Part shown: positions 8-18,652 of the stretch, piece by piece
Layout of the letters: each line of letters opens with the position of its first letter
Numbering within the stretch: the stretch's first letter is position 1
Notes under the pieces: model-generated
Told to the model about the DNA's origin: nothing
Seen by the model: the letters and a program-made list of their open reading frames with translations, nothing else
The model's database searches: none
NCBI GenBank assembly: GCA_021613535.1
Contig: CP075496.1
Span: forward strand, 7,936,001-8,000,000
Direction of reading: 5' to 3'
From: Adineta vaga
Taxonomy: Eukaryota > Animalia > Rotifera
DNA length: 64,000 nt
Made by a program: the position numbers and the translations under genes

Positions 8-2494
8 ATGTACAATAAAAATTGGTCTTTAAATCAGAATACGTCGACATCTAATGGTTTGTATCATGTCCTTTCCATTTCTTAATTTGTTATTTATTTG
101 GTTTTTCTTAGTCGATTGGAGTGCTCTGGCAGACAGTTGGATGCAACAGAGGGAACAACAAGTACATTGGCAACAAGCACCACCACCACTACCTCCTCCA
201 CCTCCACCTCCTCAATTCTTACTTAATGCTCCACCAATTCCGCCTCCTGGTCCACCTCCAATTGGTATGTCATTTCCACCGTTACCACCATCGCAATTGG
301 GCATCCTTCCACACCATCATCAGCACCAGCTACAGGTTGGTTCAAATACCACTCAGGAAAGTTTCACGATGACAAATATCGAAAGTAAGTCTTCACTTTA
401 ACTCTTCAGCTATATGAAAAGAAGAGACATGAAGACCAATGATAAGCAATGATAACGAACATCTTTAGTTTCTATATTAATTTTATCATTATAATTGAGA
501 TTAAATTTCGTATTTAGATGTGCACTGGAGACCAACACCGCCGCCTGCATTTGTAATGCCAAATGCACCTCTTCAATGGAGACCCAATACAAATCAGAGC
601 CAACCAATTTTTCCTATACAAACAGTTCGTATAACAAAAAAGGTTTTTCTTTGTAGAAAAAGGGAAAGTTTAATTCTTTAGGAAATGGCACCCTCATTTG
701 GCGGTCGAAACTTTTGGCCTCCAGGCAATTCTGTTCAACAAGCTCCTCCACCTCCGGTACCACCACCACCGCTACCACCTGCACCACTACATTCATCTCC
801 GATGCCACCTCCATTCCCTACATCTTCATTTCAACATCCACCTGTTGATAAAAGAATGATGAATTCAAGTTTTAACACATCCATACCATCATTAATGGAT
901 CTTCCTACTTCTTATGCATCCAGTCCTGTACCTCCACCCGTACCTGTTCCTCCTGTATCTATGTTATCAAGTACGTATCAATGAGAAATGAACTTTCTGA
1001 ATTGCTGCTATTTGAATGTTGATACTTTCGTAGATGAATCCACTTCGAGAACAATGCCCGATATTCCCAATAAAAGTAATAAAAACGACAAGCGACGAAA
1101 AATTCCCGCTTGGCTTCGAGATGCATTGGGACAAATGGAAAAAGAGAAAGAGAGAAAGCTGCAAAATACAAGTAATCTTAATAATAATTCAAATCTTTCT
1201 ATAAATGATACATCGTCGGTAAGTGAACTTTTTTTGTGAAAGAGTTCTTTGGATTTATTTTTATGAAATTTTCTTGAAAAAAAAGAAATTTGATGATGAC
1301 GATGATGATGATCATGACGAAGAAGAGGATGATACCAATGAAAAAATAACTCGATTAGACAAGGAATTATCGGCTGTGTTCAATGACGATGACGATGAAG
1401 AAGATCAAGATGAAGACAATGAGGATGAAGATTCAAGTTCGGCATTGATCTCTTCTACACCGATTGTCACTCGTCGAAGTCGCTTTGTGGGTTATTGTGA
1501 TTGGACATTTGAAAAAATAGAACAATGTGTTTATTATCATCTTATTTTCTTCTAACATTTCAAAGGATGATGACAGAACGACTGATCAACAGCTAAACAT
1601 AAGTGCGATTGCAAAACGAATACATTCACCCTCGCCACCATCTTCATCGACGACAACAGCCACTTTGATCGAAGACGATCCAATCGATCAAGAAGAACAA
1701 CTCGTAAGCAATATATTTTCTTTTGAATTTCTCTCACGAATGTTTATTTTAATTTTACAGATGATCAAATTACGTCGTGCTTTAACAGAATTGTTACTTG
1801 AAGTAACAAATGAAGAATTAGCATTACTTGCTAAAGAAGTTTATTTCGATTGTAAAAGTAAATGAACGATTTATCTCTGTATATGCAGTAAGGAATATGT
1901 TTTTTTTAGCGGAATCTTCGACTCCAGTTATACGAAAAGCGTCTGGATTGACAAGTTTAATTCAAAGTATGGAAAAAAAATCATCGATCTGCTTCTTTTA
2001 TTTAGAAAGAAATTCTATTTCATTATAGGCTTTTCGGGAAGTGATTCAGATGATGAAGAAAAACATGTTCAATCAATAATAAATACAACTGTGATATCGA
2101 AAACACCTAATCTAACACCTGTTAAACAAAATACTGGTAAAGAGAGACCGAGAGTGGAAAAATGATTCGAATCAAGTATGTCTCATTTTGTTTAGTGACA
2201 AATAAATCAACAAAATCTCCGAATAAAATTATCGGTGATGATAAAGATACTAAATTAAATAAAAGTAAAACAAAGAAATCGACTCGTGAACGAAGTCGAT
2301 CAACATCTCATGATTCCAAAGATAAAAAACATCATCATAAAAAACATCGTCGTCATTCTTCTTCTTCATCTTCTTCTTCATTATCACCATCTTCGAATCC
2401 TTCTCAATCCTATTCACATAAAAAGAAAAAATCTTCCAATCATAATCATCATTCTGATCATAGAAAATACGATGAACGACGACGAAGACATTAA
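8..2494 (+). CDS. PNISR: Arginine/serine-rich splicing factor PNISR (SFRS18) homolog, multi-exon
   Basis: Spliced N-terminus MYNKNWSLNQ...VDWSALADSWMQQRE (cf. WPLNQ...IDWAALAQAWIAQRE), KRRKIPAWLRDALGQMEKEKERK, LTELLLEVTNEE, Pro-rich N-half and Arg/Ser/Lys-rich C-terminus; short GT-AG introns. Confidence 0.85.
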
Positions 2495-2628
2495 AAATTT
2501 TCTCTGTGTTTTCTCATCTTTTTTTTTTGTATGATATAATTCAACTTAAAAAAACTAATATTTCGAAAGATTACATCATTCTTTCCTGTTTCTCTCTATA
2601 TCTATTTAAAATCTGTATATTTCTTAAG

Positions 2629-3584
2629 ATGATAACTATATCAATATTATATCGTTGTTTATTAGCAATACTTCTATGTTTTTTGAATTTCACTCAATGG
2701 TTCCATCGATCTATCATTCAATTTATCAGTCGTAATCACTATATTATTAAAGTGAATATTGATGTTACTCGAAATGATCCATCTAATATCAATAATTCTC
2801 AAATGGAGAGCATTCAGTTTAATAAACCAACAGAAGTACTAGCTATCATTGTGAATGAACGTATACCAGATATTGATCTATGGAAATTTATTGTGAATTC
2901 TATCGTCTTTTTTCAAAAATTGAATATTCAACATTTGATTATTTATGATTATGAAGGTAATTACCCTTTTGGTCTAAGCAAAAAGTTATTTCAATTTTCT
3001 TCTAGGTTATATCAAAGCTCGAGAAGCATCTATTATGGCTTATGTTCATACATATGATAAAAAACGTATGTAATAGATTCTTTTCAACTCACTTGTTAAT
3101 CTGTTGATATCTTCAATCATTGTAGTTCAATCATCTCTTCCATTACCAACAATTCATTTCTTATCACTGATAGATTGTAGTCAAACATTAACAAAAGTAG
3201 CTCAAACTCTTTGTCAACAAGTAAAACAAGGTGAAATCGAATCGGATGCAATTAAAATCGAAACAGTTGATCGTTGTTATGCAAGTAAAGAAAATCCATC
3301 TTGAAATCTATTTCAATGACATTTTCATCTAAACAATAGAATTTTCGACTCTTCCGGAAATTAATCTAGCAATCATTATTGGACCTATAAAAAGTTCACT
3401 TGGTTTGCATCCATGGTTAACACGATTAACAGAATTTATGTGAGTCAATCAATTTATTTCTTATTATATTTTTAATATATGAAATTATAGAATGATTGAT
3501 TCCTATAAACAACTTCAAACGACGAATTCATTTTTGAATATCGTTCAACGTTATAATGAAATCGAACAAAGGCAAGGTCGTTAA
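2629..3584 (+). CDS. NUS1: Dehydrodolichyl diphosphate synthase complex subunit NUS1 (Nogo-B receptor), multi-exon
   Basis: Hydrophobic N-terminus; LAIIVNE..., IQHLIIYDYEGYIK, PEINLAIIIGPIKSSLGLHPWLTRLTEF; ends with C-terminal RxG motif IEQRQGR* (TAA 3582-3584). Confidence 0.85.
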
Positions 3585-15432: not shown

Positions 15433-16950
15433 ATGAAGGTTGTTATTATTGGTGGAGGACCATGTGGATTGGGAGCTGCCTGGCGAGCTGAAGAGATCCG
15501 ACGTCAAGGTTAGAGCGTATATTTTTATGAATAAAAGAATTTAAAAAATCCTTTTCTTTCGCTTTTTCAAGGTAATACTAAGATTGATTGGACTTTAGTA
15601 GAAGTTTCATCAGATGCTGGTGGTTTAGCACGAACTGTTGTTGATGAACAAGGTTTCTTATGGGATATGGGTGGTCATGTTATATTTTCACATTATGCAT
15701 ATTTTACACGTTTACTTGATTATCTATTACCAAATCCTGGTGATTGGAATTCAAAAATTCGTGAAGCATGGGTATGGATGCGTGGAACATTTATTCCATA
15801 TCCATTACAACAAAATCTTCATCGTTTACCGAAACATGAAATCGTTGCTTGTATTGATGGTCTATTAGAAAATGAACGTCGTCGTTCATCCTTTACTAAA
15901 CCAGCAACGTTTGCTGATTGGATGGAACAATCTTTTGGCCGTGGTTTATGTGATACATTTATGCGTCCATATAATTTTAAAGTTTGGGCATATTCAGCAG
16001 ATAAAATGAATGTCGAATGGATGGGTGAACGTGTCGCAACAGTTAATCTTTCACGTGTTATAAATAATGTTATTCTACAACAAGATGAACTTGGTTGGGG
16101 ACCAAATAATACATTTCGTTTTCCGATGAAAGGTGGAACAGGTGCAATATGGCGTCGTTTAGCTGAAGTTTTACCACAAGAAAAATTTCAATTCAGTAAA
16201 AAAGTTGTCAAAATTGATGCCGTGCAAAAAGTGTTGACATATGAAGATGGTTCATCGGAATCTTACGATGCAATCGTCTCGACAATGCCTCTGAATTGTT
16301 TATGTCAAATTGTTGAAGGTACAACAAAAATTTCACGCTCTGAATTATTAGAAAAATCCAAACAATTTCGTTATTCATCAAGTCATATATTGGGTTTTGG
16401 TTTTGAAGGACAACCACCTGCACATTTATTAACTAAATGTTGGTTATATTTTCCTGAAGATGATTGTCCTTTTTATCGAGCAACTGTTTTTTCTAATTAT
16501 TCACCATATCATGTACCTAAACCAGGCGAACAATGGTCATTAATGTGTGAAGTTGCTGAATCATCGGAAAAACCGGTTGATCTTGCAAATATTATTGCGA
16601 TTGCTGAACAAGGTCTACGAAATACAAAATTAATCGATGATAATACGAAAATTCTTTCTCGTTTTCATATTCGATTAGAATATGGTTATCCAACACCATT
16701 CTTTGGTCGTGATCAACTTTGTGGTCCACTTTTTGATGAATTGGAATCGCATCAAATCTATTCACGTGGTCGATTTGGTTCATGGAAATATGAAGTATCG
16801 AATCAAGATCATTCAATGATGTTAGGCGTAGAAGTTATGGATCGCATTGTTTTTAATACCGAAGAGCTAACACACAAATATCCAGATATTGTTAATGCAA
16901 AACGTGACAATGTTGGCCGTGTACCTTTCATTCCAACTGAAGAAAAATGA
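15433..16950 (+). CDS. glf: UDP-galactopyranose mutase (eukaryotic GLF/UgmA type flavoenzyme), one intron at about 15509-15571
   Basis: VVIIGGGPCGLGAA FAD-binding motif, WDMGGHVIFSHY His-loop, WMGERVA, WGPNNTFRFP, CWLYFPEDDCPFYRATVFSNYSP, GYPTP, SRGRFGSWKYEVSNQDHS: the motif set of fungal, trypanosomatid and nematode UGMs. Confidence 0.9.
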
Positions 16951-17110
16951 TATTTAAAGGATAATTTAGGACATTTGTTATTATTCCACAATATATTAAT
17001 ACTTATCGAATACATTTATTTGCTCAGTATAATTTTATTTGAATGTTTTAAAAAAAGATTTTCATGTTTTAAAAAATCAATTTTCTCGCTAATCATTTGA
17101 TGAGTTAAAA

Positions 17111-18652
17111 TTAAATTTTTTGTAAAACTATTAGCATTGTTCCTAATTGAGCTTGTACAAGATTACGGATACGAATTGATGTATACGATAAATTCTGTTC
17201 AATATCATCTATCCATTGTTTAAGATGAGTTTCTAATTCAATTTGAGCATTTTCAAGTACTTGTCTATCTGCTGATGGTTGTTGCAGTTGAAGTGTAATC
17301 GCTCGATCTAACATACTCGTAATCAACATTTTATAAAATACTGAAATATACAATGCATCTACTCGACTAGCAACAGTAGCTGGTACAAGAGTCGAATTAT
17401 CATTGAGTACGGCTTGACGACGACTAGCAGCTGTAGTATTATAACTTTCTAATAACGAACGAGATGCACGATAGAATGATGAATCAATAGTCATAGCTGA
17501 TTTGATTTGTTCAAGTAAATGCATAAGAATAATATTACTTTGATTATCTTTATCAAGTCCTTGAAGAAGTACATCACGTCTTGTTACATTTGGAATAATT
17601 GTTTCGTTTGTTATACTAGCTGATTGAAAATATGGTAGTTCAGCCATGAGAAATACCGTTTTGTTGAAACCAATTTCATTAAGATAATCATAACTTGTCC
17701 CACCGCCTGACATCATTTTTGTTGGATCAATATGAGTATATTCTTCATAATAATCATATAATCTAGGTAAACTTAGTGGACTGTAGATAGCAGGGGCATA
17801 TTGAGTGACCCATGGTGCTTCAGCTTCTCCTTTTGCTAAGAATAAACCTAACGTGGATGGTAGATGTTCTAATTGAGGAAATATATCTGTTAAACATTGA
17901 CTTATATAATAATACATGCCACCAAAACCAGAATTATGTAAACCATAGACAAAATCTGGTTGAGTTAAACGAATTGCATGCATCAATGCCTGTGTTTCAT
18001 TTGAAGGTGTTGTCCAACTATAATTCTTATATGTAATTGGAAACGTCCATTCGACTTGTTCTTCTGCTCGTGGTCGATAAAAATATCGTGCATAATTTTG
18101 AATTGTAAATGGTCCATTAAACCATCCTTCATTGAGACGTGTACCATCAGGGTCAATGCATGGTATTAGATGCCATGTATATGTCTTAAGTAGTTCTGGA
18201 TAATTGAATAGATTATCAAGAAGAAAATCAATAAGAAGAGATCCAATTGGTTCATTAGGATGTGGACATGCATAGAGTAATAATGATTTACTTCCATTAC
18301 TTATAGTTAACATTGGAATTGCTTCACCATTTCGAGAATATCCAATGATTCGATATTGAACAAGATCGGTATGATTCAATGCAACGGAATGTGAATGATT
18401 AAGAAGTTTATTGACAGTAAAAAAATGTGAATAATCTGGAACACTATTCATTAAACTATCATAAATTGATGTAAATTCGATTGATTCTAAAGTAGTAATC
18501 TTTCATTTGATCTAAAAATACATTTCATATCTTACGTGTCATTATGGTACTTTGTATATATAATAGCATTCTAAAGAAAAATTGACAAACCGATTATAAA
18601 AACAAGAAGAATGATTTACTCAAACATACAAGAAACCTTTGTGTAACATCAT
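17111..18652 (-). CDS. Secreted M14 zinc carboxypeptidase, prokaryote-like, with two 5' mini-exons encoding a signal peptide
   Basis: HPNE (HxxE Zn ligands), IPCIDPDG..LNEGWF, LHNS third ligand, AELPY catalytic Glu; spliced N-terminus MMLHKGFL/MLLYIQSTIMTQ/SIEFTSIYDSLMNSVPDY. Confidence 0.8.

Follow-up and report, generated by a model that had tools for sequence, protein, structure and literature searches.

An intron-bearing UDP-galactopyranose mutase of probable protist-like origin in the bdelloid rotifer Adineta vaga

Among the genes of Adineta vaga, a bdelloid rotifer, is one for a complete and apparently functional UDP-galactopyranose mutase (UGM) of the eukaryotic type, encoded in a stretch of 64,000 nucleotides of contig C4 (C4:7,936,001-8,000,000; CP075496.1 in assembly GCA_021613535.1), which we refer to as the window. 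We consider it likely that this gene, copy 1 of two, goes back to an ancient acquisition from a protist-like donor, which preceded the divergence of the bdelloid families and was followed by a duplication, and that it encodes a cytosolic UGM. To our knowledge, UDP-galactofuranose (UDP-Galf) is the only known donor of galactofuranose (Galf) in glycans; we know of no Galf in vertebrates, and of no studies of it in animals other than nematodes, in which UGM is essential and a drug target. Foreign genes are commonplace in bdelloids, most of them being bacterial and fungal, and neither Galf nor UGM in bdelloids is mentioned in the literature that we searched.

The gene comprises two exons on the forward strand (15433-16950, in the window numbering used throughout) with a predicted product of 484 aa (Table 1). 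The exons were analysed separately, the 458 aa of exon 2 making up 95% of the protein. A preliminary description of the window, made from its letters, had proposed one 5' intron followed by an uninterrupted exon of about 1.4 kb, and this structure was borne out: precisely the 63-nt intron with its GT..AG ends is skipped in contigs of runs X1 and X14, two of the four public A. vaga runs aligned, and exon 2 measures 1,379 nt. The intron-less form is absent from the genome and is best explained by transcripts, the RNA nature of these runs being a guess. The region of exon 1 (15433-15510) is 100% identical to the start of the orthologue in Rotaria sordida as judged by tblastx, and the position and phase of the intron are the same in R. 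sordida copy 1 and in copy 2 of A. ricciae. That description had also set the simple structure of the gene against the many short exons of core genes nearby, which applies to the neighbouring calcineurin B gene, with its several exons, to which our comparison was confined.

Table 1. Coordinates of the UGM gene of the window, of its paralogue and of the genes next to the latter. Positions without a contig name are in window numbering.
Feature	Position	Strand	Remarks
Exon 1	15433..15508	+	ATG at 15433; 25 codons (MKVVIIGGGPCGLGAAWRAEEIRRQ) and the first base of a split Gly codon; holds GGGPCG, a GxGxxG motif
Intron	15509..15571	+	spliceosomal; 63 nt; GT..AG; phase 1
Exon 2	15572..16950	+	1,379 nt; in frame from 15574; 458 codons; TGA stop at 16948-16950; contains the His loop and every substrate-binding residue
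3' untranslated region (probable)	16951..17018	+	contig of run X1, probably a transcript, ends at 17018; end approximate, as contigs cannot define RNA ends
UGM copy 2	C3:597,410-598,906		63-64% identical to copy 1; intron at the same site
GT77-like transferase, GalE and UGM copy 2	C3:593290-598906 (L003 5291-6706; L002 170-2856)		side by side

What argues for a mutase? Exon 2 aligns to the structure of Aspergillus fumigatus UGM with an E value of 3.5e-138, and its residues 5-444 of 458 align to residues 35-471 of the Trypanosoma cruzi enzyme (E 9e-135), each of the two scoring about 460 bits. The protein thus resembles A. fumigatus UgmA/Glf (PDB 3UKA, 3UTE) and T. cruzi UGM (4DSG) in family, in its three-domain length class and, as predicted from sequence, in its chemistry. 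It differs from the fungal enzyme, to which it is 48% identical, in lacking an insertion of the latter at which the PDB alignment breaks in two, and from both in belonging to another subclade, which includes protists and has a bacterial clade as its sister, and in being encoded by an animal. The flavin adenine dinucleotide (FAD)-binding GxGxxG Rossmann motif lies in exon 1 (IIGGGPCGLGAA), where it aligns with the same motif in all relatives, and weak Pfam matches of this exon are to FAD/NAD Rossmann families. To compare the active site, we used the ligand-contact list of A. fumigatus UGM (PMC3624792, Table 3), with residue numbering calibrated on the representative of this enzyme in our set, P0122 (offset 22, 21/21 residues). 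The His loop G61-G62-H63, whose two glycines are specific to eukaryotic UGMs (PMC3624792), is kept in copy 1 as G-G-H at exon-2 residues 33-35. The substrate contacts Y104, Q107, F158, N163, W167, R182, N207, Y317, R327, Y419, Y453 and N457 are identical, as are the FAD contacts R447 and S461, and the differences from the list are confined to F106L, G456S and, in exon 1, T18C. Leu106 and Ser456 recur in the majority of the protist, bacterial and bdelloid relatives aligned, and Cys18 in the sequences of R. sordida and P0011, the nearest non-bdelloid relative that we traced. The claim of the preliminary description that the FAD, His-loop and substrate-binding motifs are intact thus stands.

The short bacterial Glf family (Pfam GLF, IPR004379) yielded no match to exon 2 in Pfam or among PDB chains at an E value cut-off of 0.001; the Deinococcus Glf chain 3HDQ is matched weakly by two related UGMs, P0152 (E 5e-6) and the A. 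fumigatus enzyme (E 4e-4). Domain models are uninformative by name, since Pfam assigns to exon 2 the generic PF01593 Amino_oxidase alone, and NCBIfam offers sub-threshold 'hypothetical' models only. Such labels, together with the G-A-H that replaces G-G-H in the His loop of copy 2, could be taken to mean that a UGM-like protein has adopted another role, for instance on a different nucleotide sugar, or has lost its activity, so that no Galf is made. We regard this as very improbable, as none of the side-chain contacts to uracil, diphosphate, galactose and FAD listed for the A. fumigatus enzyme is lost in copy 1, and as purifying selection is implied by the short branches over which it is conserved between bdelloid genera. 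Copy 1 would thus be expected to possess UDP-galactopyranose/UDP-Galf mutase activity, in which, as described for UGM, reduced FAD acts as the nucleophile on C1 of galactose (PMC3624792). Because the N-terminus opens directly on the Rossmann strand and leaves no room for a signal peptide, the enzyme is predicted to be cytosolic, as other eukaryotic UGMs are.

Contig C4 is of chromosome scale, in an assembly of 100.8 Mb in six contigs. The window has a GC content of about 30%, and the GC content at third codon positions (GC3) of copy 1 is 15%, like that of neighbouring genes. Between 12.1 and 16.95 kb the window is collinear with a contig of R. sordida, on which Band_7, HLH, calcineurin B and UGM genes follow in the same order; the calcineurin B gene, upstream of UGM and on the opposite strand, has a first exon that is 92% identical to its R. 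sordida counterpart. Copy 1 predates the split between Adinetidae and Philodinidae. A gene from a co-sequenced microbe, or an artefact of assembly, would agree with the microbial nature of its closest non-rotifer relatives; however, contamination is excluded by the spliceosomal intron that is removed in run contigs, the host-like GC3 and the conservation of the same flanking host genes, in the same order, in an independently assembled bdelloid of another genus, and the gene is moreover present in assembled run contigs from at least nine studies. This explanation is effectively refuted, and the linkage to calcineurin B, which had been named earlier as a check on contamination, is supported by synteny.

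The homologues of copy 1 were ranked from the best 120 matches listed, all with at least 532 bits. Bdelloids lead, with R. sordida at 87%, R. magnacalcarata at 84% and Didymodactylos at 73% identity; the matches in A. ricciae (66%) and A. vaga itself (63%) are the paralogue copy 2. Below them stand sequences without a species label at 58-68%, followed by protists (MMETSP, EukProt, Vitrella) at 54-57% and by Gemmatimonadota and Rhodothermales bacteria at 52-55%. No non-bdelloid animal is named among these 120, monogononts and acanthocephalans included. P0011, 68% identical to copy 1, lies on a 150-kb contig with a GC content of 66-68% and long uninterrupted open reading frames (ORFs), which carries a Sec23/24-family gene and one for a katanin-like AAA ATPase. 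The affinity of the katanin-like protein was resolved to Eukaryota only, and the Sec23-like protein matches A. vaga only in fragments that are 27-55% identical. A further relative, P0025, lies on a eukaryotic contig with 61% GC. Both contigs are protist, not rotifer. Compared with the 68% of P0011, the fungal UGM is 48%, a kinetoplastid-like homologue (P0129) 46% and a sea-star homologue 42% identical to copy 1; P0129, one of the 150 representatives obtained in the homologue search, is so labelled because a comparison with PDB chains puts it nearest to the T. cruzi enzyme (602 bits).

As a side observation, the 'eukaryotic' type of UGM contains a large bacterial clade of Gemmatimonadota, Rhodothermales and Acidimicrobiaceae, whose members, at 52-55% identity, are closer to the rotifer protein than are the enzymes by which the type is defined, the fungal one at 48% and the kinetoplastid-like one at 46%.

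Two maximum-likelihood trees were computed, one under LG+G4 with 90 sequences, and one with 48 sequences under the mixture model LG+C20+F+G4 (posterior mean site frequencies, PMSF) with ultrafast bootstraps; both were built without nematode GLF-1, monogonont, acanthocephalan or other gnathiferan sequences. Under LG+G4, the bdelloids form a clade with a Shimodaira-Hasegawa-like approximate likelihood ratio (SH-aLRT) support of 87, composed of the Didymodactylos sequence and of one clade for each copy (copy 1, 99; copy 2, 100). Their sister is the protist group of P0011 (93), and the two together are nested within further protist-type clades, then the bacterial clade; echinoderm and coral sequences, then the fungi with P0129, branch further out. 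The mixture model yields a clade of 14 sequences (99/96) which is a polytomy of copy 1 (99/97), copy 2 (100/100), Didymodactylos and the P0011 group, and which lies inside clades of 20 (100/96) and 26 sequences (100/97) with MMETSP, EukProt and Vitrella members. Echinoderm and coral UGMs form a separate clade with full support (100/100). An approximately unbiased (AU) test rejects the monophyly of the bdelloid and echinoderm/coral sequences (delta lnL 162.6, p 3e-7). Bacteria were considered as a donor and rejected, the bacterial clade being the sister of the protist-plus-bdelloid clade and not the nearest neighbour of the rotifer genes.

The preliminary description had left the choice between horizontal acquisition and patchy retention. 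The trees and the AU test support the former, with a source that is likely to be a eukaryotic protist and not a bacterium. The latter would imply that UGM was present in the animal or holozoan ancestor and was lost in most descendants, and that hidden paralogy or rate effects cause the bdelloid gene to group with protists. Such a history would accommodate the homologues in distant animal groups, namely sea stars, a sea cucumber, a coral and, by literature, nematodes (PMC5244609), the presence of more than one UGM lineage in animals as a whole, and the age of the gene within bdelloids, and the nearest protist contigs could be holozoan. We nevertheless deem it unlikely, given the 68% identity to a GC-rich protist gene as against 42% to the sea-star and 48% to the fungal protein, the clade with the alveolate Vitrella and its bacterial sister, both nearer than other animals, the rejection of a single animal clade, and the want of a named non-bdelloid animal among the best 120 matches. 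Within the homologues sampled, the phylogeny by which vertical descent was to be judged thus has bdelloids nesting among protists and apart from other animals.

Was the gene acquired once? The copies are no more than 63-64% identical, the two copies, Didymodactylos and the P0011 group collapse to a polytomy under the mixture model, and copy 2 adjoins a repeat of the telomere type, which in bdelloids is a hallmark of captured foreign DNA. All this would suit two or more independent acquisitions, in which copy 1, copy 2 and perhaps the Didymodactylos gene came separately from related protists. We find this quite improbable on account of the intron: in both paralogues (A. vaga and R. sordida copy 1, A. 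ricciae copy 2) it falls into the Gly codon after (R/V)RQ, with common position and phase, the intron of A. vaga copy 2 is in frame, and protist relatives have no insertion at the corresponding point of the protein alignment. The common site and its lack in protists favour one acquisition, then the gain of the intron, then the duplication, and the bdelloid clade of the LG+G4 tree (SH-aLRT 87) likewise speaks against separate arrivals.

Several points weigh against a single ancient transfer from a protist-like donor. The nematode, monogonont, acanthocephalan and other gnathiferan sequences are not in the tree. The group submitted to the AU test was tested with the tree already known, though it matches the placement that the preliminary description had named as refuting horizontal transfer. 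The monophyly of the bdelloid sequences relative to the P0011 group is a polytomy under the mixture model and moderately supported under LG+G4. The runs that exhibit the spliced form carry no RNA record, so that their being RNA is a guess. Finally, if the nearest contigs, of the P0011 and P0025 type, were holozoan, vertical retention with many losses would become more plausible.

With these points in mind, the single transfer from a protist-like donor suggests the following course of events, whose direction and timing we infer. The ancestor of the sampled bdelloids (Adineta, Rotaria and probably Didymodactylos) would have taken UGM from a protist-type eukaryote, and the acquired gene would have gained one short intron close to its 5' end and adopted the AT-rich codon usage of its host. 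Duplication would have given rise to copy 1, in the window, and to copy 2, on contig C3, of which copy 1 would since have been inherited vertically, in a fixed gene order beside calcineurin B. In the cytosol, the enzyme would, with reduced FAD, interconvert UDP-galactopyranose and UDP-Galf, and this supply of UDP-Galf may be used for rotifer glycans. From an intact UGM that appears to be expressed and has been kept by several bdelloid genera, one would predict that rotifers have Galf in glycans of their surface, eggs or cuticle, and an apparent transfer from protist to animal is added to the foreign genes of bdelloids. As the enzyme family is well understood, as bdelloids have many other foreign genes of metabolism, and as UGM homologues exist in other invertebrates, a specialist may find this plausible rather than startling.

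How does the rotifer enzyme relate to those of other animals? While the preliminary description rightly placed the gene in a non-nematode animal, here the bdelloid A. vaga, its statement that animal UGM is characterised mainly in nematodes proved too narrow: a profile built from more distant representatives retrieved many animal homologues, from the sea stars Patiria, Acanthaster and Asterias, the sea cucumber Holothuria and the coral Desmophyllum. These resemble the rotifer protein in their eukaryote-type domain, in the same conserved residues and in their occurrence in animal genomes, but form a separate clade at 42% identity and are often multi-copy and fused to PF11913, whereas the rotifer gene is unfused. 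Nematode GLF-1, as in glf-1 of Caenorhabditis elegans and UGM of Brugia malayi, is likewise a eukaryote-type UGM in an animal, needed for surface coat, viability and embryogenesis as far as the account in PMC5244609 goes, which cites Novelli 2009 for it. No nematode protein is named among the best 120 matches (at least 532 bits) or among the echinoderm-type profile matches, which places nematode UGM outside the close relatives of the rotifer enzyme. Nor was a nematode sequence recognised among the 150 representatives; of four that were considered as candidates, P0241 and P0179 lie on the contigs described at the end, P0168 on a short transcript-like contig and P0205 in a fragmented NCBI assembly. 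A precedent for the gain of an enzyme that forms UDP-Galf is provided by Ciona, which obtained a bacterial-type UGM (Glf, IPR004379) by horizontal transfer (PMC13390645), the subject of the one paper in the literature searched that brings up both UGM and rotifers. However, the Ciona genes are of the short prokaryotic type, single-exon and recent, whereas the rotifer gene is of the long eukaryotic type, old, intron-bearing and nearest to protists; the two types of UGM are 14-18% identical to each other (PMC3624792).

Compared with copy 1, which is the syntenically conserved one, copy 2 of A. vaga is set apart by its G-A-H and by its neighbour GalE. It starts 161 nt downstream of an intronless GalE gene (TIGR01179, E 1e-116), with a (CCCACA)2 telomere-type repeat in between. 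This GalE has about ten matches without a species label at 69-79% identity, two of whose contigs were examined and are AT-rich, and its best named matches are enzymes of Mucilaginibacter (Bacteroidota) at 61-64%; canonical GalE genes with several exons also occur elsewhere in the A. vaga genome. A conserved, operon-like pair of GalE and UGM was considered and rejected, as the adjacency was not found on the A. ricciae contig or on two other AT-rich GalE contigs, and as the affinity of this GalE is Bacteroidota-like. A GT77-like gene (PF03407; C3:593290-594705), one of five PF03407 loci in the genome, lies some 1.5 kb upstream in the opposite orientation, and its product has a type-II membrane anchor. 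The ORFs of GalE and copy 2 are identical to the NCBI A. vaga model I4U23_010922 (protein P0026). This model joins them into one protein of 777 aa, although a stop codon and 161 nt of DNA separate the two ORFs, and it uses another donor site than the conserved position of the intron would imply. The fusion has the appearance of an error of annotation.

Most of the echinoderm and coral homologues (P0271-P0366) are fused at their C-terminus to DUF3431 (PF11913), for example at residues 549-745 of P0271. In A. vaga, at least ten DUF3431 loci exceed the Pfam cut-off (such as C1:3858414-3859007 and C3:13730005-13730655), as compared with none in 14 control genomes, and several of them are long uninterrupted ORFs with an N-terminal hydrophobic anchor of the type-II membrane kind. 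Modelled with AlphaFold (pLDDT 85.6), the domain as found in the echinoderm fusions matches exclusively GT-A-type glycosyltransferases or nucleotidyltransferases, with Foldseek E values of 3e-3 or weaker. VIA-align gives Z values of up to 8.6 for it, with 6.9 and 6.6 for the Galf transferases GlfT2 and AfGfsA, values which license the claim of a common fold only. No functional study of DUF3431 was found among the papers listed for it. By the gene-fusion argument, DUF3431 is a candidate for an animal Galf transferase, a lead and not a finding, and in A. vaga both the DUF3431 and the GT77-like genes are leads to the pathway, as candidates only. As a testable candidate, the UGM-DUF3431 fusion is the more useful by-product of this work. 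The wider proposal, in which bdelloids build Galf glycans with a protist-derived UGM, DUF3431 is the galactofuranosyltransferase, and such glycans are widespread but overlooked in invertebrates, we hold to be doubtful as a whole.

Four minor observations concern the surroundings of copy 1 and its more distant homologues. Beyond the gene, tail-to-tail and 160 nt past its stop codon, an intronless ORF of 446 aa lies on the reverse strand (17111-18451), with a Peptidase_M14 match (E 3e-8). It was not found in the 4.7 kb after UGM on the syntenic R. sordida contig, and its absence from that locus marks it as a lineage-specific newcomer next to a foreign gene that is older. P0121, a representative of 1,551 aa with two UGM-like stretches and 743 bits in all, may be a tandem or fused UGM. 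Downstream of the UGM homologue P0179, and in the same orientation, lie genes for a PF11397 GlcNAc-transferase and a 2OG-Fe(II) oxygenase (contig positions 820-3802), an arrangement which recalls hydroxyproline-glycosylation pathways. The distant homologue P0241, finally, occupies positions 2027-3475 of a small JGI metagenome contig that also has genes for a ResT/TelK-type protelomerase and for endonuclease I, which suggests a phage or virus with a linear genome that carries a UGM-like gene.

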